Virus record (IMG/VR): IMGVR_UViG_3300027736_001324
Location: 199,710 to 263,709 of that record
Direction: 5' to 3' (one strand)
Length of the DNA stretch: 64,000 nt
In this document: piece after piece, positions 1 through 32,739 of the stretch
Position numbering within the stretch: the first letter of the stretch is position 1
Layout of the letters: every line of letters starts with the position of its first letter
Notes under the pieces: generated by a model
What the model saw: the letters and a program-made list of their open reading frames with translations, nothing else
What the model was told of the DNA's origin: nothing
Database searches by the model: none
Position numbers and translations under genes: made by a program

Positions 1-1
1 A

Positions 2-3000
2 GATGTTAAAGATATAACAATATCTGGCAGTAACGCAGCGTTTAGTTACACTAAGCATAGTGATTTGGATTTACATATATTAGTAGACATGGGTAACTTA
101 CCTGTAGATGAAGTATATAGAGAATTATTTACAGCAAAGAAAACAATATATAATGACACACATGACATAAGAATTCATACTATTCCAGTAGAATTATATG
201 TACAGGATAGTAGACAACCTGTAGTAAGTTTAGGTGAATATAGTGTAATGAACGACCAGTGGATAAGAATACCCACTAAGCGTAGAAGTGATTTTGACCA
301 AACCGCCACCAAAAGCAAATATGAAAAGTTATTAAGTTTAATAGAGATCGCCCTCAAGTCAAAGAAGTATAGCAAAGTAAAACATATAATAGACACAATC
401 AAAAGATATAGACAAGCAGGTTTAGATAAAGGTGGTGAGTTTGGTCCTGAGAATTTAGCATATAAGATGTTGCGTAGTCAGGGATATATTACGAAGTTAT
501 ATGATTTAAGAGACAAGTTACATAGTGAGAAGTTATCGTTTGAGACTATGTATCAGAATATAGATGAGAATGAAGAAACAAATCATTGGTACGATGCTGG
601 CGTGAAGGATGCTACTCGTGGTGCTAGACCTAATCCACGCACATATTTGCCAACACTTAAAGACAAGCAAGCAAAGCATCCAGAAGAAGTATATTTTTAT
701 ATGAATGGGTATAAAAGTGTTAAGCAAGGTGTGGCGGAAGGCTCCGAGAACAATAACCCAATAGCAAATAAAATATTCTTTGCTCGTAGTAATAAAACAC
801 CCAAAGGATGGAGTTATGACCATGTGGGGTTTATAACTCAAGATGGAAAACAAATTCAAATGAGTGGGCATAAAGGCAATGATGTATATGTCACTAACGA
901 TGTGACTGATGATCCGGAGTTTCCCAAACAAAATATCAAAATTGTATCATTATCAAAACCAGTATCGGTTCCTACAACTAACTCAGTAGAAGCAGAAAAT
1001 TGCGGAACATTTGTGGCAAATGTATTACGAGCCAATGGTATAAAAGATTTTGATACACAAAAACTATATAGTGTGTTCAAAAAGCCTCAAGAGCAAGGTG
1101 TGGCGGAAGATAAAGAAAATAACAATTCAAGATTAGATGAAATTTTATATAAGTTATGTAATATTGTTAAAAAAGAAATAAAAGAAAAGACAGGGGAACA
1201 CGCTGTTGCTGCTTGTATTATTGATCCTGATAACAGAATAGTAGCAAAAACAAGTAAAGACAAACACAGTAGATGGATTCATGCTGAACACAATGCCATT
1301 GATACATATGAAAAAAAGTATGGTGAAGTACCAGAAGGCAGTATTATAGTAACTACATTAAGCCCCTGCAATGAATATGATGATAGAACCTCCGATGAAA
1401 GATTTGGTGAAAGTTGTACAGATTACATAAACAGCAAAGGCATTAAAAAAGTCTATTGTGGATATATGGATCCTACACAAGATAATTATAACAGAGAATT
1501 TAATGTCATAGAAACTAGTGACACCGACCTTCGTAGGCAATGTAAACAGTTTGCTGATACTTTTTTGAAGAAAAATATAGATGAAGCGTTTGATACTCCA
1601 CTTCCAATAACATGGGAGAAAGGTATGCATGGTGATATTGATGCACTTGCTAAATTACCCGATGGATCAAATTTAAGCATTATGTTTAATAAACAAGATA
1701 ATATTAAACCTGATGACAAGACATGGATGGTTGAATTTTATAGAAACAACAGTCAAGAAGTAACAGGTGAGGGTGACGCACAAAAAGTATTTTCTACTGT
1801 GCTAGTTGCTATTCAACAATTCATTAAAAAATACAAACCACTAAAAATCTATTTCTCAGCAAGCAAAGAGATGGATCCGACTATAAATTACGGCCCAGAT
1901 GATGTTGTGCCTAATCCTGAAAGCCGTGCTAAGTTATATGATAGAATGGTACTGCGTTATGCTAAATCTTGGGGATATAAGTTTTTCCGTGCTGATAACG
2001 GTTCTTCTGTTATATATCAATTGTCAAGAATACCAAAACAAACGGCTGTGGGTGAAGATTACACCATGCAATTTGCTGCTGAAAAAACTCCACCAGTAAG
2101 TCCCTATGCCGGCGTTAAAGATAATCAATATCGTGGTGGAATAAGTGAAGCCTCTGGTAAAAAAATCAGTTTCAAAGTACAAAAAGGCAATGGAAAATTC
2201 TCTACCACTTTAACTGTTAACAATACACCAGCTGGAATATATCAATATGACAGTAACACTGGGCGTAGCATTGCTGAAGTTTATCCAGAATTCAAAGGAA
2301 AAGGACTAGGTAAATTATTAGTTTTACATGCTATCTACACCGCAGCAAAATTAGGATTAGATTTCCAAGAAGATGAATCAAGAACCAGTGCTTATGATAA
2401 TGTGTTAGATAGTTTAAGCAGCAACGGTTATATTGTAGATGATGATGGATATTGGTATGTTACAGGTGACGGGGAGCAATATCTAAAACAAGCATTGAAC
2501 GAAGCAAGTGGGTATATCCCAAGCGAAAAAACTCCTGCAATAAATCCATACGGCGGTCTTAAAGATAACCAATTTCGTGGTGGGATAAGTGAAGCAGTTT
2601 CTCCTAAATATGTAACTAGAGTTGATATGACACCCATTAAAGATTTTGAATCTGGTATGAAAACATATTATGGAACAGATGATTGGCATGAAAGCGGGTT
2701 AGAAAAGAAAGATAACTTCACACAAGAAATGAAGGGTTTATATGCAGGTGAACCACATCGTACAGCATTATATGCTAGTGGCAATGCAAGTAAAACTAGA
2801 TTCTTAGAATTGAATGATCCTAAAACAGGTCAACCTGTCGTATATTTTGATAAGAAAGATATCCCTAGAATTCGCAACACAAAGACATATGTTAGTGTGT
2901 TTGATGCTAGTAGATTTAAAAAGTTACCAACAGGGGAATACTTTAGTGAGAACCCTGGTAAACCATTGAAACAAGAAGAAATAACCGATCCTTTCAAGTA

Positions 3001-3292
3001 TATGACGAACAATGGTTGGGTAGTAAGAGTAACTGATGATATTCAAAAAGAATTCAAAAAGGCACAACAACTACATAAAGCAGGCAAGATAGACCATTAT
3101 GGTGGTGAAAACTTGACGGAAGCAAGTGGGTATATCCCAAGCGAAAAACAAAAGAATGATCCTAGATATAGCACCGCACTAACAATAGATGTACACCCAG
3201 ATTCTATAAAAAAGAACGCAAAAGCCTTCTATTGGAACACCAGTAGAGCAGGAATCCCCCCAACTGCTAAAGCAAACGGCAAAATCTATTAA
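2..3292 (+). CDS. 5'-truncated modular polyprotein: Pol-beta-type nucleotidyltransferase, permuted papain/NlpC-P60-like module, CDA-fold Zn deaminase, unknown phage domain, GNAT acetyltransferase, unknown module
   Basis: Frame is open from nt 2 (DVKDITISGSNAAFSYTKHSDLDLH = GS..DxD NTase motif). DHVGF...NCGTFVANVL (740-1093); HAEH...LSPC...SC (1109-1585); VYPEFKGKGLGKLL GNAT motif A (2150-2503). Modules are bounded by QGVAE/IDE/VGE/ISE/LNE/LTE. Confidence 0.85.
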   Translation, partial: DVKDITISGSNAAFSYTKHSDLDLHILVDMGNLPVDEVYRELFTAKKTIYNDTHDIRIHTIPVELYVQDSRQPVVSLGEYSVMNDQWIRIPTKRRSDFDQTATKSKYEKLLSLIEIALKSKKYSKVKHIIDTIKRYRQAGLDKGGEFGPENLAYKMLRSQGYITKLYDLRDKLHSEKLSFETMYQNIDENEETNHWYDAGVKDATRGARPNPRTYLPTLKDKQAKHPEEVYFYMNGYKSVKQGVAEGSENNNPIANKIFFARSNKTPKGWSYDHVGFITQDGKQIQMSGHKGNDVYVTNDVTDDPEFPKQNIKIVSLSKPVSVPTTNSVEAENCGTFVANVLRANGIKDFDTQKLYSVFKKPQEQGVAEDKENNNSRLDEILYKLCNIVKKEIKEKTGEHAVAACIIDPDNRIVAKTSKDKHSRWIHAEHNAIDTYEKKYGEVPEGSIIVTTLSPCNEYDDRTSDERFGESCTDYINSKGIKKVYCGYMDPTQDNYNREFNVIETSDTDLRRQCKQFADTFLKKNIDEAFDTPLPITWEKGMHGDIDALAKLPDGSNLSIMFNKQDNIKPDDKTWMVEFYRNNSQEVTGEGDAQKVFSTVLVAIQQFIKKYKPLKIYFSASKEMDPTINYGPDDVVPNPESRAKLYDRMVLRYAKSWGYKFFRADNGSSVIYQLSRIPKQTAVGEDYTMQFAAEKTPPVSPYAGVKDNQYRGGISEASGKKISFKVQKGNGKFSTTLTVNNTPAGIYQYDSNTGRSIAEVYPEFKGKGLGKLLVLHAIYTAAKLGLDFQEDESRTSAYDNVLDSLSSNGYIVDDDGYWYVTGDGEQYLKQALNEASGYIPSEKTPAINPYGGLKDNQFRGGISEAVSPKYVTRVDMTPIKDFESGMKTYYGTDDWHESGLEKKDNFTQEMKGLYAGEPHRTALYASGNASKTRFLELNDPKTGQPVVYFDKKDIPRIRNTKTYVSVFDASRFKKLPTGEYFSENPGKPLKQEEITDPFKYMTNNGWVVRVTDDIQKEFKKAQQLHKAGKIDHYGGENLTEASGYIPSEKQKNDPRYSTALTIDVHPDSIKKNAKAFYWNTSRAGIPPTAKANGKIY
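2081..3148 (+). repeat. Intragenic direct repeats flanking inserted modules
   Basis: Exact 30-bp repeat gaagcaagtgggtatatcccaagcgaaaaa at 2501-2530 and 3119-3148; diverged ~70-bp repeat (EKTP..PY.G.KDNQ.RGGISEA) at 2081-2151 and 2525-2596. Confidence 0.9.
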
Positions 3293-3344
3293 GTTTCCAT
3301 ATTGTGGTATTTTGATAAATACTCTATAACTTTGGGAAACCGTC

Positions 3345-4907
3345 ATGAGATTTAAGCAAATAGTAGAAAATTCAACAACAGCAGGATCAGTCGCAACCGT
3401 AGCACAGCCTATGATGACTCAAACCCGTGAAAGTGTAGATGTCAAGGGACTAAAGCCCGTAAAACAATTAATGAAGGGCACTAAAAAGAAAGGTCCCTAC
3501 GCTAATAGTATTGTTGAAGGAAAAGTTAAAGAACTTATCAGCGATTTAAAAAACTTAACTTCTTATGATTTTGAAAAGAAACACAAACAATCTAAGGCTG
3601 ACGTTAGAGCCGACATGAAGAAAGTCACCGAAGATGATCTTTCAGAACAAGACTTAATCGTTATCCCAGGACAAGGTAGACTAAGAGGTACTGGATTTAC
3701 AAAGCATGACCCTGATCGTGCTGAACATGAAGGTCAAACACTAAAGAATAGTTTACACACTATCATTCGTTTAGCAACTCATTTAGACAAAGAATTAACA
3801 GTAAGAGATAACTTCCCAGAATGGGTGTCAGAGAAAGTCGGTTCAATCAAGGGTGACATGCTTTCTGTAATGAACTATATAATCAGCAGCCAAGAAATGC
3901 GACATGATCCAGATACTATAAATGAACTCAGTTCTGCTCTGTTACAAACAGCCGCACAAGCTGCTACAGACAAACGTAATCAAGCAATGGATCCCGAGTT
4001 ACATAATGCATTAGGTGGCGGCTATATGAATCCATTAGCAAAACATTATGATAATGTATCACAAAAAATGGACAATAGGGCAGCACAAGTAAAAAGAAAA
4101 GAAACGATACAAAATATCGCTTCTAAAATCGCTTCTCCGGCGGTGATGCGTAAGATGGGTATGAATGAAGGCTCACAACGAGTTGATTCAATTGTTACTG
4201 ACGCATTACGAGTAATGAAGGGTCCAGAAGTAAGTGATGCTGTACTAGCATTAAAGAGAGTATTAGGCGACAGAGCATATAATGAGCGCCGCGGCTTTTA
4301 TAGTTTCTATGTTGATCAAATACATGATATGTACGGTCAGCAAGGCGTGGCGGAAGGCGAGTTAGAAGAAGATTTAAGCCGTAGAGGATTTTTAAGAGGC
4401 TTGGGCGCGGCAACGTTAGGTGCTACAGCATTAGGTGCTGCAAGTAAAGCACAGGCAAGTCAAGATTTAGGAAACGGATTTGTTTTAACCACTGTTGACG
4501 TTTTTGGTGGAAAATTTAAAGCAGTATTAGATACACAATCTGATATACATTATTTGCCAAATCGTCACGAAGGCGGTGGCGCTATTGTTAGAAGCATGGC
4601 TCCTTTTATTATGATAAAGAACGGTCAGACAAACACTGCTATGAATGTTGGGCCAGCTGTTCAGGCTGCATTAAAGAAAGCTGGACTATTGAAAGGTGTA
4701 GAAGAAGGTGTTAAAGAAGGCAAAATTGACTTTGCTAAGAAATTACAAAAGAATGTAGATAATCATAACAAAGCTGTAGTACAAACTAAAAAAGCTGTAG
4801 GTAGCAGAATTTCTGACATTGGCGCCGGCGGCAAAGAATACAATGTAAAGACTGATGCTGCATGGGATGCTGCTAAGAAAAAAGTTAGTGAAGGTTTAAG
4901 GAAATAA
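3345..4907 (+). CDS. Probable virion-internal polyprotein with an internal twin-arginine signal-like segment
   Basis: 520 aa. N-terminus MRFKQIVE; GATAAATA late-type promoter at 3314-3321; QGVAEG linker followed by LEE-DLSRRGFLRG...KAQA. Confidence 0.75.
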   Translation: MRFKQIVENSTTAGSVATVAQPMMTQTRESVDVKGLKPVKQLMKGTKKKGPYANSIVEGKVKELISDLKNLTSYDFEKKHKQSKADVRADMKKVTEDDLSEQDLIVIPGQGRLRGTGFTKHDPDRAEHEGQTLKNSLHTIIRLATHLDKELTVRDNFPEWVSEKVGSIKGDMLSVMNYIISSQEMRHDPDTINELSSALLQTAAQAATDKRNQAMDPELHNALGGGYMNPLAKHYDNVSQKMDNRAAQVKRKETIQNIASKIASPAVMRKMGMNEGSQRVDSIVTDALRVMKGPEVSDAVLALKRVLGDRAYNERRGFYSFYVDQIHDMYGQQGVAEGELEEDLSRRGFLRGLGAATLGATALGAASKAQASQDLGNGFVLTTVDVFGGKFKAVLDTQSDIHYLPNRHEGGGAIVRSMAPFIMIKNGQTNTAMNVGPAVQAALKKAGLLKGVEEGVKEGKIDFAKKLQKNVDNHNKAVVQTKKAVGSRISDIGAGGKEYNVKTDAAWDAAKKKVSEGLRK

Positions 4908-4908
4908 T

Positions 4909-7584
4909 ATGAAAACAAATGAATTTTTAACAGAATTATCTAACGACAAGTTAGGAAAGTACAAAACCGCTGCAGGAAAAGATGCTACTGCTGCTGATAA
5001 AGCTGGTAATTTTAAGCGCGGCAATAAGCGTATGAGTGGCATTACCAATGCAACTAAAAAAGAATTTGCAAATGATGCTAAAAAGGTATCAGAAAGTAAG
5101 CAATTTGTTTTAAATGAATCTTTATTAATGGAAGATCCCATTTATCGTCAATTTAAAAGTGTAAGTAAGTATATTGCTGAACGTAGACTTAGCAAACAAG
5201 AAATCTATCAAATATTTGCTGATGCTGAAACCGGCATGACAAGTAAAGATACTGGTGCTAATCGTACAATGCTTGGCCGTGGTAAAGATGTAACAGGTAA
5301 AGCAGTTACCAGTGTTAAAGATGCTGTATCAGGTGTTTTAAACTCTATACAATCTTCTGCTCCAGTAGCAGCCGTTGATGTTGCATATGATCAAGCTACA
5401 GCTGCCTTAGGAAAATTAACCGGCGGAGATAAAAGCAAGATAATGAAATCTATCATTGGATATCGTAATCTTGCTAAACAATATCCTAAAACAGCAGGAT
5501 TTGCTAAAGCAGCATTGGTTGCTGCTGTAGGACTTGCTACCGGTGGAGCAGGACTACCTGCTATTGCAGGTTTAACTTATGCACTTGATTCTGCAATTAG
5601 AGGCGATAAGTTATCAAGTGTAATTGGTAAGGGTGCCGGCGCTGCTGCGTTAGCATACGGTGGACAAGCTGCGGCACAATATGCTCAAGGTGGCGCTGAT
5701 ATTCCAGGAGCAAATCCACATCAACTTGATCCGTCACAAATGCAACAAGGCCCAGGTGGTGGAGGAGGTGGCGGTGCAGGTGGTGCTGATATTCCTGGAG
5801 CAAATCCACATCAATTAGATCCATCACAAATGCAATCAGGATCCGGTGGTGCTGATATTCCTGGAGCGAACCCGCATCAATTAGATCCGTCACAAATGCA
5901 ACAAGCAGCAGGCGGTTATAAGGAAGTAATAAAGACAGTAGCAAAAGGAGATACATTAAGTAATATTGCTCAACAATACGAAACTAGTGTTGAAGCATTA
6001 ATGAGAGCAAATCCTCAAATAACAAATCCCGATGCTTTAGCAATAGGAACTAAACTTAATATACCTCCAGTAAATGCTGATACTTATCTGCAAGGTGTAG
6101 GTACTGCTGCTGATACTGCTGCCAAAACTGCGTCTGGCGCATATGATAGTGTACCGGCTGCATTAGGTAAACAAGCAGCAGCCAATCGTGCCGGTGTTAC
6201 TGAAAGTATTTGGAAAAATCATTCTCCTAAACTAGATAAAAACATTATAGAATCTATTAATTTTAAAAAGTTATCAGCATATGATTTAATAGACAAGAAA
6301 ACTACTGCGTTCAACTGGGCATTAAATGAAAGTATTGGTAATAAAAATAGAAATATAAATTTAACTACAGTAGGGGTATATACTATATTTGAAAATGTTG
6401 ACCGTTACCGTCTTGCTGTAATGGAAGTAGCAGGAGTTCCGGGCAGCACTCGTCCAGAGCAGTATCGTCCAGATGAGCCGGAAGGTAAAGGTAAGGAAAG
6501 CAAACCAGGTTTAATTGGTAGAGGACTTAATTGGTTAGACAAAACTGCCGGCAAAGTAGGCGGCGCATTAAGTAATTTTGGACATCAGTTCACTACAAAC
6601 GTTACAAAAGAAAAACTAAAAATGAATTGGACTCAAAAAGGTGAGCCAAGTGATTCAGATGAAGTAGCGGCTTTTATGAAAAGTCAAGGTGTACCAGAAG
6701 ATGTAATTTCAACAGTATACACAAAGATGGGTCTACCTTTTACTATGACTCCCGCTGCAGCCGCAACTGCCCCGGCGGCAAACACAGGATCAACAAGTGC
6801 TAATACTAGTGGTGCTGGTGCAGGCGCATTTAGTTCAATGGCAAATCAATTACCTAAATCAACTAATACATCATCTACTGGCGGCACAACTACAAATACA
6901 TCAACTGGATTAACACATACAAGCAAAGCAGTTGCACCAACATCAGGTGGTGCAGGTGGGACAAGTAGTGTAGGCGGTATGTCACAACCATCACAGCCTA
7001 ATAGTCCTAGTCAACAACAAGCAGTGGCTCGCACAGTAAGACAACAGATTGATGACATTATGCATACCATAATGACTCAACATAATGACGACCAACCATC
7101 ATTAGTAAAATATTTGCGCCAACGTCTTGATAGTAGTTTTCCCGGTGATGCTACAAACGCAGCAGCACCAAAAAGAGCAGCACCTAAAAAAGCAGCACCT
7201 AAAAAAGCAGCGCCCAAAACAGCAGCACCTAAAGGCAAAAAACCTGACAACACAGTAGCGATGCCAAAACGTGAAAAATTCCGTATAGGCAAAGACGAAA
7301 TCAAACCCGATAATCCCATGTATGATAAAATTAAGGCCGCTAGCGGGACAAATGAATCATTAGGATTAAACTATCCAGAAACATATGAACAAACTAATGA
7401 TAAATTTAAAAGCAAAGGTCAACGTAGAGTTGCTGCACTAACCAATGAAGAAGAAAAACAACGTTTAGATCCTAAATGCTGGACTGGTTATAAAAAGCAA
7501 GGCACTAAGATGAAGGGTGGTACTAGAGTTAATAACTGTGTCCCAATAAAAGAATCAGCAATATTACAAGGCTTAAGAGGATAA
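4909..7584 (+). CDS. LysM-domain, low-complexity virion-associated protein
   Basis: 891 aa. N-terminus MKTNEFLTE; LysM (VAKGDTLSNIAQQYETSVEALMRANPQITNPDALAIGTKLNIP); Gly/Ala hydrophobic stretch; C-terminal CWTGY...NCVP motif. Confidence 0.8.
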   Translation: MKTNEFLTELSNDKLGKYKTAAGKDATAADKAGNFKRGNKRMSGITNATKKEFANDAKKVSESKQFVLNESLLMEDPIYRQFKSVSKYIAERRLSKQEIYQIFADAETGMTSKDTGANRTMLGRGKDVTGKAVTSVKDAVSGVLNSIQSSAPVAAVDVAYDQATAALGKLTGGDKSKIMKSIIGYRNLAKQYPKTAGFAKAALVAAVGLATGGAGLPAIAGLTYALDSAIRGDKLSSVIGKGAGAAALAYGGQAAAQYAQGGADIPGANPHQLDPSQMQQGPGGGGGGGAGGADIPGANPHQLDPSQMQSGSGGADIPGANPHQLDPSQMQQAAGGYKEVIKTVAKGDTLSNIAQQYETSVEALMRANPQITNPDALAIGTKLNIPPVNADTYLQGVGTAADTAAKTASGAYDSVPAALGKQAAANRAGVTESIWKNHSPKLDKNIIESINFKKLSAYDLIDKKTTAFNWALNESIGNKNRNINLTTVGVYTIFENVDRYRLAVMEVAGVPGSTRPEQYRPDEPEGKGKESKPGLIGRGLNWLDKTAGKVGGALSNFGHQFTTNVTKEKLKMNWTQKGEPSDSDEVAAFMKSQGVPEDVISTVYTKMGLPFTMTPAAAATAPAANTGSTSANTSGAGAGAFSSMANQLPKSTNTSSTGGTTTNTSTGLTHTSKAVAPTSGGAGGTSSVGGMSQPSQPNSPSQQQAVARTVRQQIDDIMHTIMTQHNDDQPSLVKYLRQRLDSSFPGDATNAAAPKRAAPKKAAPKKAAPKTAAPKGKKPDNTVAMPKREKFRIGKDEIKPDNPMYDKIKAASGTNESLGLNYPETYEQTNDKFKSKGQRRVAALTNEEEKQRLDPKCWTGYKKQGTKMKGGTRVNNCVPIKESAILQGLRG
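5689..5901 (+). repeat. Three 57-bp intragenic repeats encoding GGADIPGANPHQLDPSQMQ
   Basis: Copies start at 5689, 5779 and 5845, with synonymous third-position differences and Gly-rich spacers. Confidence 0.95.
7162..7233 (+). repeat. 15-bp tandem repeat encoding AAPKK/AAPKR/AAPKT
   Basis: gcagcacc(a/t)aaaa.. units repeated about 5 times; histone-H1-like basic tract. Confidence 0.9.
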
Positions 7585-24825: not shown

Positions 24826-25674
24826 ATGGCAAAATTAAAAGTCGCAGAATTATTCTATAGCATTCAAGGTGAAGGTCGCTATATGGGCGTCCCTTCTGTC
24901 TTTCTACGCACATTTGGATGTAACTTCAAATGTGCAGGGTTTGGTATGCCTAAGGGCGAACTAAGCAAAGAAGTAGAAGATATCGCTAGTCGCATACATT
25001 ACTATACTGATTATAAACAACTACCATTGGTCAGTACAGGCTGTGATAGTTATGCTAGTTGGGACCCAAGATTCAAAGACTTAAGTCCGATGCTTGAAAC
25101 AGATAGTATTGTTGATAGCATTATGGATATGCTACCACACAATCGTTGGTTGAGTGAACATCTTGTTATCACAGGCGGCGAACCATTATTAGGTTGGCAA
25201 CGTAGTTATGTTGATTTGCTTTCACATGAAAACATGCGCGGATTACAAGAATTAACTTTTGAAACTAACGGAACACAAGAATTGCAACAAGACTTAAAAA
25301 TCTTTTTACATAAATGGTGTATCAGTCGTAGCATGGGTGCAATAACATTTAGCGTCAGTCCTAAACTAAGTATCAGCGGAGAGAAGTGGGAAGAAGCAAT
25401 AAGACCTGAAGTTGTATATGAATATACTCAAGTGGGTCATGTATATCTTAAATTTGTTGTAGCAAACAAACAAGACGTAGAAGAAGCACAAGAAGCGGTT
25501 AATGAATACAGTAAGCGTGGCTTTAGAGGTCATGTATATTTGATGCCTTGCGGCGGTGTTGAAAGTTTATATAATATGAATGCTAGAACAGTTGCTAATG
25601 AAGCAATGCGTTTAGGCTGGCGTTATAGTGATAGACTTCAGGTACCTCTTTTCAAGAACGCATGGAATACTTGA
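24826..25674 (+). CDS. queE: 7-carboxy-7-deazaguanine synthase (radical SAM)
   Basis: ELFYSIQGEG, VFLRTFGCNFKC..GCDS, ITGGEPLL, FETNGT, SVSPKL. Confidence 0.93.
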   Translation: MAKLKVAELFYSIQGEGRYMGVPSVFLRTFGCNFKCAGFGMPKGELSKEVEDIASRIHYYTDYKQLPLVSTGCDSYASWDPRFKDLSPMLETDSIVDSIMDMLPHNRWLSEHLVITGGEPLLGWQRSYVDLLSHENMRGLQELTFETNGTQELQQDLKIFLHKWCISRSMGAITFSVSPKLSISGEKWEEAIRPEVVYEYTQVGHVYLKFVVANKQDVEEAQEAVNEYSKRGFRGHVYLMPCGGVESLYNMNARTVANEAMRLGWRYSDRLQVPLFKNAWNT

Positions 25675-25768
25675 TGAATTTCTTTTGGGGATTCTTACTT
25701 GGATATATAGTAGGTGTATTATACATGTGCTATCGTTCCAATATAGATGCTAGAGTGGATAGAGAATA

Positions 25769-26026
25769 ATGCCCTCAAGTGATTGGACTACACAATCAGC
25801 CGATGCTTATCATTTTAAAAGATGTGTTATGGGTAGAAAATTAAAGTTTACCCTATTGCCTAGACGATGCTATGTAACAAAGCGTATAATGTGGTTAGAG
25901 AGTGCATATTGTATTACCGCAGGATACAGAGCACGAGCACATTTTGGTGATAGCATTTATGTTTATGAACATCGTTGGTATGATAAAGATGAATATTTAA
26001 TAGCAAGATTAAGGGATTTAGTATGA
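25769..26026 (+). CDS. Hypothetical protein
   Basis: 85 aa coupled ORF; a 31-aa hydrophobic ORF lies at 25674-25769. Confidence 0.6.
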   Translation: MPSSDWTTQSADAYHFKRCVMGRKLKFTLLPRRCYVTKRIMWLESAYCITAGYRARAHFGDSIYVYEHRWYDKDEYLIARLRDLV

Positions 26027-26217
26027 GATTTGAAATGCGTTGGCTTATTACAGCAGGATGGGATGGGCCTGAGAAGATATTACAATATCGTTATCAAACA
26101 GAAATAACAGACTATGCTTCACAGAATCCTAGAACAGGTGGATTTCTTAAACGGGCAGGATTTACCGAATGGGTTACTGTTCCTTCAGTAGATGAGGTAT
26201 GGAATGCGGACATATAA
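26023..26217 (+). CDS. Hypothetical protein
   Basis: 64 aa coupled ORF. Confidence 0.6.
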   Translation: MRFEMRWLITAGWDGPEKILQYRYQTEITDYASQNPRTGGFLKRAGFTEWVTVPSVDEVWNADI

Positions 26218-28753: not shown

Positions 28754-30262
28754 TTAGTGTCTTAACAATAGTGTACTTAATACACCAGGATCGTTAGCAC
28801 TAACATCACCTTCGCCCGGAGCAACAATAACATTGTACTTCATTCCAGTTGGGATTGAATTTCTCTTAGCCATATATTCAGTATAACTTAAAATACTTGA
28901 AGCACTGATTCCATATTCTGTAGCAATACGTTGTTTCATTTCTTTAAGTGCGGCTTCATCAGCAGGTTGCCATGCTCCGTCATCAGTTTTCTTCAAGTTA
29001 CCCTTCTCATCCTTAGCTAACAAGTCATAGAATAGTTTCTCTGGAACAATACGACTATTCTTTGTTGTATCTAATTTAGGGTCTTGCGCCTTTATTTTCT
29101 TCTCTTGCTCAGTGTTAGCACCTTCGCTCCAATTGATAATAAAGTTGTCTGGTTTCTTAGCTAATGCTGCTCCAGCCATCTTAGTGTAAGCATAGAACTT
29201 AACATCAGGGTGTTTAGCAGCCATCTTTAATGCCATGTCTAAATATTCTGGACTAAAGAAGTCACCGGCATCATGCCAACGAACTGTTGTTTGCCAACCA
29301 TCAGGGAATTTCTTATCACCCTTTGCTCCTGCACTTGCTTCTTTTGATATCTCACTACTTAATTGATTAAAGAATCCATCAGGATCATTCAACAGATATG
29401 TTAATATACGACCATCACTTTGCCATGCTGCTTTAAACTGAATCTTACCGCCCTTCATAGCAAAGCATTCTACTTTACATGAACCTGCACCCGGGCAAGT
29501 ATTAACAATGATTAATTTATTGGTTTGTTCATCAAGTGCAATTCCTACTAATGCCGCAAATCCAACATTGAAGAATTGTTCAAACTCTCCGTTACTATGC
29601 TTCATCTTTTCATTTTGCTTTAATAATGATTTAGGACGAATTGCTAATGTTTGTTTAACTGCATCTTCATCATATGTTTTACCATCCGGACTCATGTAAG
29701 TAACTACGCTACTACGATGGATGTAGGGCATTTTGTATTTGTCACCTTTGGTCTTGCCAGTAGTATACTTTTCGTTACCTTTTTTATCTATTTTAACATT
29801 ACCGCTTTTATCTAAATCAGGAGTACCAACGATACGCTTCATGTAATCTTGAAATTCTTGGCTATCCAAATCACGGGTTTGTGCTGGTAGTTTAGTTGCT
29901 TCATCTAGCCCAGATAGACTACGAATTCTATCTAAGTGTTCCGAGCCTTCCGCCACACCTTTGCGATAATCTGGAAATCCAAACTTGCGATAGTATGCTA
30001 ATGCGTGACCAAACATCTTTTTGTATTCTTCAGTACCCTTTTTGTAACCTTTTGTAGCCAACTCATTTTCAATATGACGAACCATTGGCATCTCTGCTTT
30101 TAGTAATTCTGGAGCACCTTCCGCCACACCTTGTTCTGATTCTTCATCAGGTTTTGAATCACCTGCACTAGCAACAAATTGCTGAGGTGTCATAATCTTT
30201 ATGCCACTAGGGGCTCCTGGCATCTTTGGCTCTGCGCCCTCTAATAGTTCTTTAAAGTTCAT
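28754..30262 (-). CDS. Polyprotein with Gp88-like (radical-SAM-like Cys cluster) domain
   Basis: MNFKELLEG; two GVAEG linkers; TCPGAGSCKVEC; VRWHDAGDFF; FYAYTK. Confidence 0.7.
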   Translation of the reverse strand: MNFKELLEGAEPKMPGAPSGIKIMTPQQFVASAGDSKPDEESEQGVAEGAPELLKAEMPMVRHIENELATKGYKKGTEEYKKMFGHALAYYRKFGFPDYRKGVAEGSEHLDRIRSLSGLDEATKLPAQTRDLDSQEFQDYMKRIVGTPDLDKSGNVKIDKKGNEKYTTGKTKGDKYKMPYIHRSSVVTYMSPDGKTYDEDAVKQTLAIRPKSLLKQNEKMKHSNGEFEQFFNVGFAALVGIALDEQTNKLIIVNTCPGAGSCKVECFAMKGGKIQFKAAWQSDGRILTYLLNDPDGFFNQLSSEISKEASAGAKGDKKFPDGWQTTVRWHDAGDFFSPEYLDMALKMAAKHPDVKFYAYTKMAGAALAKKPDNFIINWSEGANTEQEKKIKAQDPKLDTTKNSRIVPEKLFYDLLAKDEKGNLKKTDDGAWQPADEAALKEMKQRIATEYGISASSILSYTEYMAKRNSIPTGMKYNVIVAPGEGDVSANDPGVLSTLLLRH

Positions 30263-32739
30263 TTCTTATTGTTCCTAATGTATTGTTCAGCAAGCATTAC
30301 TAATTCATGTAGTTCTTCAATGCTTTCGCAATGCCATCTACGCAAACTTTTATTTATATTGCTATTTGGATCGTGTGCTGTTTTTGCACCAGTACGATGT
30401 TTCTTCATTCCACGCATTCTAGCACAGAATGATTTACGACGGGCAGCGGCTTTGCTACCTTTTTTAAGTTTGCTTGGTTTAGTTGTTACTGCTGTTTGAA
30501 TCTTGCTGCCTGGATGACTACGGCGATAACTGGCTACACTCTTTTTACTCATCCCACCTGCACGTTTATTATTGTGCTTTGACCAATTCTCGCCCTCATC
30601 AACTTCTTTCTTTGCCATGCCGATACCATCACAAGCACCGCATTTATACTTTTTAGCGCCCGGTACGTCATTAGCAGGAAGAATTTTTCCGTCAGGTGCT
30701 TTCCATAAAGTACCACGACCGTTACATCTTTTACAACTAGTATTAGGGTTCTTTACAGTGGCACCTGGCATGTAGTCACTCTTGCTGAAACCGCCTGGCA
30801 AGCCTTCCGCCACACCTTGCTGACCCGGCACTGTATCAACAATGTTTATCATTTTATCAGGAACTATTTGTACAGGAACATTGCCGTTGTATCCGGCGGC
30901 TTGGTATGCGATAAATCTATGATTCCCATCTATTACAAAAAGTTTACCCTTGTTATTCCAAACAACTAACGGACCTAATTTCCCATTTTGTTTTAGTTGT
31001 GGTAAAAGATGGTTATTGACCCATTGAGCAACCTTTGGATCCTTCATTGACTTACCATTTTCCCACATTTGTAATTTATTAAAAGGTGCCTCAGTTACTG
31101 GCAAACTTTTCTTTATCCTGTCATCAACAGTAGCACCTTTATAAGCAGGATTTGTATAGATAGTTACTAGTTGCTGTTCCAAGCCTTCCGCTACACCTTG
31201 CTGTTGTTCTGCCTTTACAAATTGATTGGGTCTTGGCATATCTAACCTGCGTGGATCATTCATTATGGCAGGATCTTGCATTAATTTGCTTTTAGGATTA
31301 ATCCAGAATCCAACCATTGTTCCTTTTAAGGGTAATGAACCTTTTGGAACAACTACTGCTTCTTCAAATTCACCACCTGCTTTGGCAGTAGGTTCAGCAT
31401 ATTTTGCTTTGCCTTTTGCGTTAGTTCTTGCCATTGGGTCTGTGTTCTGTGACCGTGCTTCACCGTCTTTTTTTAGATACGGGTTAAATGCTAGACCTTT
31501 GATATTTGTACTTTGACTTGTACCTAGTGTTTTGAAATTGCTTTCGACTGCATTACGATCTAAAACTAGTATTGCATCTCTACCAATGCCAGCCATTTGA
31601 TTGCTTGCATTTGATCCACTGGCATAGCCCCAATCTCTGGTCACGCTTACTGTAGGCAGTTTAGTCTGAGCCGAGGTTGCTGCCTGCGGACTAGTTGCTG
31701 ATCGGATACTACCGGACGATAGCATTCCTTTAAGACCGTTTGCATCCGTAGCATGATAAAGATAGTTTCCGCCTATACCTTCATTTAGCCCTTCCGCTAC
31801 ACCTTGCTTGTCAATACTTCCCCGTATACCGCATTTAGCACAATGATATTGTGTTAGCGTTGGGTGTTCTTTTTTCTTTACAGGACCATGGCAATGTGGG
31901 CAGGTACCTGTGGCCATTGCCTTGACTTCTTTACTCATATCTTCTTTGGAGCCTTCCGCCACACCTTTTGATGAAGCAGTTGGAGATTGCAGTGCCCTAG
32001 TTTTAACTCCAGGCATGCCACCTAATGTCGCTAATTTTTTAACCCAGCCTTCAGCGTCAGTATCATTAAGAGATGTAACTACAGTGCCATCGGGGTCAAT
32101 AGAATCTATACCAGTAAGTTTATCGCTAGCATATCCTGTATTATCAAAATAATGTCCAGGTACTGTACCAACTTTATTAGAACGATCTAAGCGAGTTTTA
32201 TACTCAGCATCCCCTTTTTGTTTGTGTACCTCTAAACCTTTAGAAATTGCTGCACGAACTTGTTGTTGTTGTGTGGTTTCAGTAGAGCCTTCCGCCACAC
32301 CTTGTTCTTCAATATTAGGGTTATTGATTTGTTCTGCTACACTATTCAATTTGTCATTGCTAACTGTAACAAAACTATACATCCAACCATCTAAACTAAC
32401 ACCCTTATCTAATTGATTCTTAATATGTATAGCATTTTTAATAATTTCACGAATCTCGCCTTGAGCCATTCCATCAATTTGCTCATCTTCCATAGCATAA
32501 CCTTCGGTTTTGGGCTTCTTCCCAGCCTTTTTCATGGCAATGGCAATTGCGGCCTGTCGTTTTGGGTTAGCCGCTTCATCTGTTGCTGACTTTTTTAATG
32601 CATCCGCTGTTGGAGCACCTTTACTTCCGGGCTTACGCATATGTTCACCGGAACCATTCTTGATTCGGTCACGCTTGGCATGTATGTTTGCCCATAACCC
32701 AGGCTTTTTGTTTTCGGATATAATTTCACTAAATCTCAT
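30259..32739 (-). CDS. Modular polyprotein: Zn ribbon, ART-like, ParB/Srx-like and DnaJ-type Zn finger modules plus conserved basic termini
   Basis: MRFSEIISE; five GVAEG linkers; CPHC..CAKC; YLYHAT..VSVTRD..EFEE; VIDGNHRF; CKRCNGRG..CGACDGIG; RRKSFCARM. Confidence 0.8.
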   Translation of the reverse strand: MRFSEIISENKKPGLWANIHAKRDRIKNGSGEHMRKPGSKGAPTADALKKSATDEAANPKRQAAIAIAMKKAGKKPKTEGYAMEDEQIDGMAQGEIREIIKNAIHIKNQLDKGVSLDGWMYSFVTVSNDKLNSVAEQINNPNIEEQGVAEGSTETTQQQQVRAAISKGLEVHKQKGDAEYKTRLDRSNKVGTVPGHYFDNTGYASDKLTGIDSIDPDGTVVTSLNDTDAEGWVKKLATLGGMPGVKTRALQSPTASSKGVAEGSKEDMSKEVKAMATGTCPHCHGPVKKKEHPTLTQYHCAKCGIRGSIDKQGVAEGLNEGIGGNYLYHATDANGLKGMLSSGSIRSATSPQAATSAQTKLPTVSVTRDWGYASGSNASNQMAGIGRDAILVLDRNAVESNFKTLGTSQSTNIKGLAFNPYLKKDGEARSQNTDPMARTNAKGKAKYAEPTAKAGGEFEEAVVVPKGSLPLKGTMVGFWINPKSKLMQDPAIMNDPRRLDMPRPNQFVKAEQQQGVAEGLEQQLVTIYTNPAYKGATVDDRIKKSLPVTEAPFNKLQMWENGKSMKDPKVAQWVNNHLLPQLKQNGKLGPLVVWNNKGKLFVIDGNHRFIAYQAAGYNGNVPVQIVPDKMINIVDTVPGQQGVAEGLPGGFSKSDYMPGATVKNPNTSCKRCNGRGTLWKAPDGKILPANDVPGAKKYKCGACDGIGMAKKEVDEGENWSKHNNKRAGGMSKKSVASYRRSHPGSKIQTAVTTKPSKLKKGSKAAARRKSFCARMRGMKKHRTGAKTAHDPNSNINKSLRRWHCESIEELHELVMLAEQYIRNNKK

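Follow-up and report, generated by a model that had tools for sequence, protein, structure and literature searches.

In the contest with bacterial defences, the phage proteins that enter the cell together with the DNA stand in the front line. To our knowledge, the diversification of these injected repertoires is poorly documented outside the small internal-protein genes of T4. Here we describe a locus in IMG/VR virus record IMGVR_UViG_3300027736_001324, a viral contig of 263.7 kb (G000), of which the final 64 kb were analysed (64,000 nucleotides, G000:199710-263709; hereafter the window). The window begins within ORF1, a single open reading frame (ORF) that encodes a modular protein and contains two pairs of direct repeats, A and B. 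Considered jointly, two propositions appear likely: that ORF1 is a polyvalent (multi-effector) polyprotein, with variable small-enzyme cassettes between a constant N-terminal domain (N-domain) and a constant tail of 55 amino acids (aa), and that the repeats result from recombination between two alleles of one cassette site.

The closest described systems are the polyvalent proteins of phages and conjugative elements, which combine 2-15 effector-type domains in one polypeptide (Iyer, Burroughs, Anand, de Souza, Aravind 2017; PMC5512222). Their repertoire includes Pol-beta nucleotidyltransferases (NTases), GNATs, deaminase-like domains and nuclease domains. They are predicted to be packaged, processed and delivered at infection, and recombinational variability has been suspected (PMC5512222). 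ORF1 resembles them in having many effector domains, NTases and GNATs among them; at least two of its domains are unrelated (NTase-like, dCMP_cyt_deam, DUF6934, GNAT-like and DUF6886), and it is encoded by a phage contig, as judged by a gp23-type major capsid protein (MCP), a Peptidase_S77 protease and a family-B DNA polymerase (PolB). The two differ in how processing may be arranged. An in-built zincin-like metallopeptidase (MPTase) has been proposed for polyvalent proteins, where it is frequent without being universal, whereas domain searches matched no peptidase family in ORF1, and its module boundaries carry L/I/V-x-E motifs of the gp21 type. Modules containing HExxH were noticed by eye in the relatives L006, L008 and L037-L040; Pfam did not confirm them. 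For ORF1, by comparison, the cassette polymorphism has been recorded one allele at a time in a natural population, and the breakpoints are mapped.

A second point of comparison is T4 itself, whose internal proteins IPI-III and Alt (PMC9026906, PMC8442874) share several features with ORF1: a T4-type MCP, an S77 protease, CTS-like N-termini (in the case of ORF1, in neighbouring genes), motifs ending in E, a cargo of small enzymes, and a hypervariable locus. The T4 protease gp21 cleaves after Glu in L/I-x-E (PMC9026906), and the T4 capsid targeting sequence (CTS) is MKTYQEFIAE (PMC8442874). The T4 internal proteins are encoded by separate small genes and are cut once, after the CTS. In contrast, ORF1 concatenates its cargos, has internal sites and lacks a clear CTS. 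G000 is a T4-like jumbo phage, uncultured and from fresh water, with a CheckV completeness of 69%. It encodes the MCP (profile match of 329 bits), the gp21-type prohead protease (PF03420, 99 bits, 25576-26211, minus strand), whose gene adjoins scaffold-like and MCP genes, and the T4-like PolB. A megablast search with the first 6 kb of the window gave no match to GenBank phages.

Two further systems show how such loci can vary. In PeSL shuffling (Arbiol 2010, PMC2839356; Comeau 2014, PMC4122927) and at the glycine-rich motifs of gp38 (Trojet 2011, PMC3157838), crossovers take place in short conserved sequences on either side of the variable segments. ORF1 shows the same layout and a similar outcome, in that whole modules have been inserted, deleted or replaced between relatives. 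However, PeSLs lie between genes, consist of a promoter and a stem-loop, and mobilise entire genes, whereas the joints in ORF1 are in-frame coding linkers inside one ORF. Promoter and terminator signals are not enriched at the ORF1 site, where promoter-like and terminator-like sites in 1900-3400 do not exceed shuffled expectation, so it does not qualify as a PeSL cassette. ORF1 also differs from the gp38 adhesins in its predicted function, which is effector cargo rather than host recognition. Polymorphic toxin loci likewise have a constant N-terminal part and exchangeable downstream modules that recombine through conserved pre-module motifs. In those loci, however, a single tip is replaced from silent cassettes and immunity genes are present. 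The modules of ORF1 accumulate serially between constant ends, and we saw neither immunity genes nor a silent array at ORF1. In the literature searched, we found no earlier description of the linker motif or of jumbo-phage polyproteins cut by prohead proteases.

The frame of ORF1 is open from the first bases of the window through 3292. Its parts follow in the order NTase-like N-domain, unknown 118-aa module, deaminase, DUF6934-like module, GNAT-like module, DUF6886 module and 55-aa tail. The features that bear on the repeats are the following (window coordinates):

1-3292, plus strand: ORF1, modular polyprotein of 1151 aa; its ATG lies at G000:199546, 164 nt upstream of the window
2081-2152, plus strand: linker A, copy 1 (A1), EKTPPVSPYAGVKDNQYRGGISE/A, the 'VSPYAG' allele type; 96-97% identical to the single A of L006, L008 and L014
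2153-2506, plus strand: GNAT-like cassette of 118 aa, ending LNE/A; assigned from sub-threshold Pfam matches, an AlphaFold2 (AF2) model and Foldseek
2501-2530, plus strand: repeat B, copy 1 (B1), EASGYIPSEK; the first codons of the tail module, broken off after EK
2525-2530, plus strand: GAAAAA microhomology at the novel joint SGYIPSEK/TP, where B1 and A2 overlap (codons E-K)
2525-2596, plus strand: linker A, copy 2 (A2), EKTPAINPYGGLKDNQFRGGISE/A, the 'AINPYGG' allele type; 96% identical to the single A of L010
2559-3129, plus strand: L005-like tract, differing from L005 at 2 of 571 nt (99.6% identity), with breakpoints inside A2 and at the start of B2
2597-3124, plus strand: DUF6886 cassette ('Mod6') of 176 aa, ending LTE/A; Pfam DUF6886 at 27.6 bits against a cut-off of 27
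3119-3148, plus strand: repeat B, copy 2 (B2), which runs on into the tail
3125-3292, plus strand: tail module of 55 aa (SGYIPSEK..DPR..TSRAGIPPTA..NGK) with the stop codon, defined by alignment and found in 316 IMG/VR relatives

Both repeat pairs had been noticed in an earlier examination of the bare sequence (the sequence-only reading), which placed an exact 30-bp EASGYIPSEK repeat at 2501-2530 and 3119-3148 and a diverged repeat of about 70 bp at 2081-2151 and 2525-2596. A repeat search recovers both. The B repeat is exact over 30 nt and extends to 36 nt at 94% identity (2495-2530 and 3113-3148). The A repeat is a direct repeat of 71 nt (2081-2151 versus 2525-2595) with 59 positions alike (83%); the peptides of A1 and A2 differ by six non-synonymous codons, and seven more codons differ synonymously. 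By chance, a 3.4-kb ORF would be expected to hold 1.6e-10 exact 30-mer pairs and 4e-15 pairs like the 71-nt one. All copies are in frame in the one ORF, with the layout A1-GNAT-like-B1-A2-DUF6886-B2-tail. The same reading had noted that removal of the two modules leaves a continuous RGGISEA-SGYIPSEK-QKNDPRY, and this sequence is literally present in the relative L004.

Relatives were collected by two scans of IMG/VR, one with the whole of ORF1 (62 loci) and one by alignment of the tail (80 loci of the 316 tail-bearing stretches). The N-domain, the tail and the downstream gene are retained in the orthologues, whose lengths run from 302 to 1745 aa. The minimal genes, in L098 and L102 (302-310 aa), consist of the N-domain and tail alone. 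The comparisons are allelic, since L004-L010 and further loci share the conserved downstream gene. The site compared runs from the end of linker A (ISEA) to the start of the tail (SGYIPS), and it was found in the following states:

Empty (RGGISEA-SGYIPSEK): L004, L011, L014 and its duplicates, L019, L027, L084, L090
GNAT-like module alone: L006, L007, L008, L010, L013
DUF6886 module alone: L005, L009
114-aa module: L023, L029
147-aa module: L020, L021, L025
DUF6934-like module: L016

The junction of linker A with the tail is thus a polymorphic cassette site, at which related phages carry either no module or a single one, drawn from at least five unrelated kinds. The sequence-only reading had predicted that the inserts at ISEA would vary among orthologues (none, one or different ones), and all three states occur among the IMG/VR relatives; the uniform architecture that it named as evidence to the contrary was not observed. 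The two cassettes of the window also occur together in the opposite order. In the JGI fragment P0002/L147, DUF6886 is followed directly by GNAT and then by the tail, with no duplication of the linker; its three segments are 97%, 87% and 79% identical to the window at the DNA level. Duplicated A and B were found only in the window and in L003 among the relatives compared, and a degenerate pattern for the SGYIPSEK-TP joint matches L003's contig alone within IMG/VR. In run X4, from another lake, one contig has an empty site (joint 2145->2500), and an L005-type A is joined to the DUF6886 module (2559). These two alleles, both unlike that of the window, show cassette polymorphism inside one community.

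The alleles of single-cassette relatives account for the two copies of each repeat. A2 matches the only A of L010 at 96% identity but its own partner A1 at 83%, and its 3' half is identical to the A of L005. Because A2 is nearer to L010 than to A1, the two copies represent pre-existing alleles of one linker and not a diverged local duplication. The L005-like tract has sharp edges, with 11 mismatches in the 23 nt to its left and dense mismatches from 3149, and its flanks differ from L005 at 5-12 positions per 50 nt (tract versus flanks, Fisher p = 3.5e-16). This tract is a recent exchange, with crossovers within A2 and at the start of B2. The tract shows that lineages trade cassettes through homologous recombination, the crossovers falling within the conserved linkers on either side. 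B2 equals B1 at every position 3' of 3129, and the orthologous B sequences of relatives differ at 1-8 of 30 nt. Therefore, both copies of B carry the recipient lineage's version, and we infer that their identity 3' of 3129 reflects the right-hand crossover within B or a later conversion.

The repeats thus exist because the lineage combined a GNAT-type and a DUF6886-type allele of one site. A GNAT-type allele broke after the E-K of the tail, at the eighth codon (SGYIPSEK), and the broken end was joined, across GAAAAA, to a DUF6886-type allele just past the E-K that precedes the foreign linker A (TPAINPYGG...). This join duplicated both flanks. In the simplest reading, the event would be an unequal, illegitimate, microhomology-mediated crossover between co-infecting relatives that each carried a single cassette, with an in-frame gain of 618 nt. 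SGYIPSEK/TP is the one non-homologous joint of the locus. The sequence-only reading had proposed that two modules entered at the same E-A site by successive recombination with relatives carrying different inserts. Recombination with such relatives at one site is borne out by the affinity of A2 to L010 and by the L005 tract, but the entry point of the second module was not the E-A bond itself: this module is joined after eight tail codons. Nor are the repeats duplicated target sequences, as they had been called: they are duplicated flanks of one polymorphic site, and the second module brought its own linker A. A transposable element with target-site duplication was considered and rejected, since the repeats are staggered (A-M1-B-A-M2-B) and form no target-site pair. 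We found no inverted repeats at the module ends and no transposase domain in the domain searches of ORF1.

The locus is an allele-level record from natural lake populations that includes an empty site, at least five cassettes, both orders of a two-cassette array, mapped crossovers and one microhomology junction. The two repeat pairs themselves are a modest but clean footprint of a wider exchange of effector cassettes.

An alternative that we consider unlikely is a tandem duplication of A-module-B in situ, by slippage at GAAAAA, after which A diverged and one of the modules was replaced. In its favour, the 618-nt interval between the copies preserves the frame and has GAAAAA at its ends, and B1 equals B2, as expected for a young duplication. 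However, the two modules have unrelated folds, and the left crossover needed to replace one of them would have had only about 11 nt of homology to work with. Furthermore, A2 is closer to the A of another phage than to A1, yet B1 and B2 are 100% identical, and one event cannot give both ages.

We give somewhat less credence still to a dedicated DNA-level system that moves the cassettes, either site-specific recombination or nuclease-stimulated gene conversion recognising linker DNA. Such a system would fit the QGVAE linkers, 54 of 79 of which (in 29 loci) share the 15-mer CAAGGTGTGGCGGAA despite its rare GTG and GCG codons; it would also fit the appearance of the same modules in different genes and the GIY-YIG modules of relatives. 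At the A/B site, however, linker DNA diverges like its surroundings (79-97% identity), breakpoints fall at differing positions inside 70-170 nt of ordinary homology, and the boundaries have no inverted repeats, promoter/terminator cassettes or recombinase.

It is very improbable that the repeated peptides are functional linker or cleavage motifs held alike by selection on the protein, with no historical signal. Linker motifs do recur all along these polyproteins, but B1 and B2 agree at all synonymous positions while orthologous B sequences vary, and B1 is a truncated tail start fused to A, an arrangement present in no other locus compared.

The joints were also examined as a possible artefact of assembly, which the sequence-only reading had named as an outcome that would count against it. 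L003, a 43-kb IMG/VR contig from another sample, has the same arrangement as the window, and it is a separate genome because its N-terminal domain is only 92% identical at the DNA level. The joints are also contained in Logan contigs of three runs from different studies. In X3, one contig of 1030 nt (record 22) spans 2395-3427. In X1, which may be the source sample, records 5 and 6 span 2428-2599 and 2570-3267 with zero mismatch. The X2 unitigs stop precisely at the 30-mer, which is what assembly with k = 31 predicts for a repeat of 30 nt. A mis-join through the repeat cannot make the B1/A2 junction, because the partners share only 6 nt. Thus, even though single-cassette and empty alleles co-occur in lake samples (the joint 2145->2500 and a loose end at 2559 in X4) and X2 unitigs break at the 30-mer, a chimera of co-occurring GNAT-allele and DUF6886-allele strains joined via the shared repeat is hardly credible, given that the B1/A2 junction lies inside contigs of three runs and in the independently assembled L003, whose N-terminal part is 8% different.

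Recombination between two alleles of the cassette site thus remains our preferred account of the repeats, and it leaves the question of what the cassettes and linkers do. The linkers, which the sequence-only reading called protease sites, are predicted cleavage sites for the gp21-type prohead protease of the phage. On this model, the protease would divide the polyprotein inside the head into individual effectors that accompany the DNA into the host, as do the internal proteins and Alt of T4. The other boundaries of ORF1 that matter for this prediction are the following:

725-739, plus strand: first QGVAE/G linker; architecture breakpoints of relatives fall here
1094-1108, plus strand: second QGVAE linker; breakpoints of relatives also fall here
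1574-1588, plus strand: NIDE/A boundary, again a position of breakpoints in relatives

In order, the boundaries of ORF1 read NIDE/N, QGVAE/G, QGVAE/D, NIDE/A, ISE/A, LNE/A, ISE/A and LTE/A, so that a motif of the L/I/V-x-E type stands at every module boundary, and six of the seven [LIV]-x-E-[AGS] motifs in ORF1 lie at such boundaries. Each cassette has the terminus [I/V/L/M]-x-E, with A, G, S, D or N as the next residue. Among 46 distinct contexts that precede the tail, P3 is I, V, L or M in 44 (background 21%), P2 is any of 12 different residues, and P1 is E and P1' is A in 45 each. This signature agrees with the gp21 motif L/I-x-E (PMC9026906).

The surroundings of ORF1 point in the same direction. 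Seven ORFs of G000 have N-termini like the T4 CTS: at G000:117507(+) and 117878(+), and in the window at 3345(+), 4909(+), 8027(+), 28752(-) and 32739(-). Their starts read MRAKEFITE, MRANEFIVE, MRFKQIVE, MKTNEFLTE, MRAREFLSE, MRAREFIAE and MRFSEIISE. They include the two genes immediately 3' of ORF1 and an 826-aa ORF with five GVAE sites. ORF1 therefore has as neighbours a group of proteins predicted to be head-internal or ejected. Homologues of the DUF6886 cassette elsewhere are single ORFs behind CTS-like N-termini. When the N-terminus of the MCP was compared with T4 gp23, LLAE/S could not be cleanly placed on LTE/A because of a 30-residue gap, which leaves LLAE/S as no more than a candidate maturation site. 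If the linkers are gp21-type sites, a phage could add or swap ready-to-release effectors with no need for new promoters or targeting signals, and the motif-delimited modules would constitute a catalogue of dozens of small candidate modules for host takeover or anti-defence.

Several points weigh against the overall interpretation of ORF1 as a packaged polyprotein diversified by recombination between cassette alleles. The start of ORF1, MNLKELNSFKLSD, is only loosely CTS-like, lacks an E-terminated motif and is part of the conserved NTase-like domain. The T4 late promoter TATAAATA is not upstream of ORF1, and this motif is under-represented across the genome. Part of the E-A conservation ahead of the tail could stem from the tail module, and the GNAT label is a weak one, which draws on sub-threshold hidden Markov model matches and weak fold matches. 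As for the history of the site, the empty alleles may be either ancestral or secondary losses, the near-identical L005 tract could post-date the duplication, and the recombination events cannot be told apart in order or number (one step or several).

The identities of the individual modules differ in how well they are supported. The N-domain has the GS...DxD signature of Pol-beta NTases, matches PHROG 36119 and has weak NTP_transf_2 Pfam matches. Its neighbours in the ESM Atlas are viral proteins of 235-240 aa, 19-29% of which carry NTP_transf_2. A profile of the N-domain against PDB sequences gave no match at E <= 1, so the NTase label relies on the motif, the weak Pfam matches and the Atlas neighbours. 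The cytidine/dCMP deaminase domain matches dCMP_cyt_deam at 8e-12. For the GNAT-like cassette, three GNAT Pfam families match below threshold (E ~0.008), and its AF2 model (pLDDT 89) has top Foldseek matches in the PDB that are all acetyltransferases but weak (E 2e-3, TM 0.45-0.54). This cassette is 70-97% identical in amino acid sequence across 35 loci in many contexts. The DUF6886 cassette has homologues at 52-60% identity and an AF2 model with a pLDDT of 88, with which Foldseek found nothing significant in the PDB. In a VIA-align wide comparison with Z no higher than 4.7, ADP-ribosyltransferase folds recur (TreX, Z 4.5; pertussis S1, Z 4.3; PltA, Scabin, DarT and Tpt1). DUF6886 may thus be an enzyme of this type, like T4 Alt, a suggestion that we treat as a lead rather than a result. 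Relatives of ORF1 add a second NTase, GIY-YIG, amidoligase and GNATs to this repertoire.

The QGVAE linkers are conserved at the nucleotide level as well. The 54 sites with exactly the shared 15-mer are among 79 distinct ones, and they use GTG (17%) and GCG (7%), rare codons that ordinary GVAE peptides of the same genome replace with others. Sites were noted in the window at 725-739, 1094-1108, 4341-4355 and ~29959-32315 (minus strand), at G000:122617 and in loci L003-L064. This pattern suggests copying of, or selection on, the linker DNA as such, perhaps in the role of a recombination joint. Module 2 of ORF1 (window 725-1110) is 95% identical at the DNA level to part of a different ORF of L007 (10785-11170), and the DUF6934 module (window 1570-2050) is 95-96% identical in otherwise unrelated ORFs of 864-900 aa in L033 and L034. 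Because these two modules occur in different ORFs, cassettes move between genes and not just between alleles. It is conceivable, though we hold it with considerable doubt, that the linkers do double duty, releasing ejected effectors at the protein level and acting at the DNA level as near-invariant universal recombination joints. If so, cassettes could be transferred in frame between genes and genomes, in a system for counter-defence cargo reminiscent of integrons or exon shuffling, and the duplicated A and B would be an intermediate caught in the act.

Some further observations concern the sequence upstream of ORF1. A GC-rich terminator hairpin followed by the octamer ACTAAATA lies 5' of ORF1 (L001:1225-1275, G000 ~199434-199484). 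The octamer is also present 17 nt upstream of the start of a portal-like gene at G000:29187(-), and it may be a late-promoter variant. Late expression from this shared octamer was considered and is too weak to claim.

Downstream of ORF1, the window holds other candidates for head-internal proteins. The first is the following:

3345-4907, plus strand: downstream ORF with the T4-CTS-like N-terminus MRFKQIVE/N, an internal QGVAE/G and a Tat-like signal, in the context of a head-internal-protein locus

The twin-arginine-type signal of this ORF, SRRGFLRGLGAATL...AQA/S, lies at ~4341-4450, directly 3' of its QGVAE/G linker. If that linker were cut, the C-terminal fragment would begin with the Tat signal, which hints at export to the host periplasm. 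The next ORF, at 4909-7584, encodes 891 aa; its start is CTS-like, it contains a LysM domain (1e-13) and has transglycosylase/endolysin-like PHROG matches, and it is a candidate ejected cell-wall-degrading protein. Two further linker-separated polyproteins are encoded on the minus strand: the 826-aa ORF at 30259-32739, which has a CTS-like N-terminus, five GVAE sites and ParB-like and DUF6321 matches, and an ORF at 28754-30262 with a GP88 family match.

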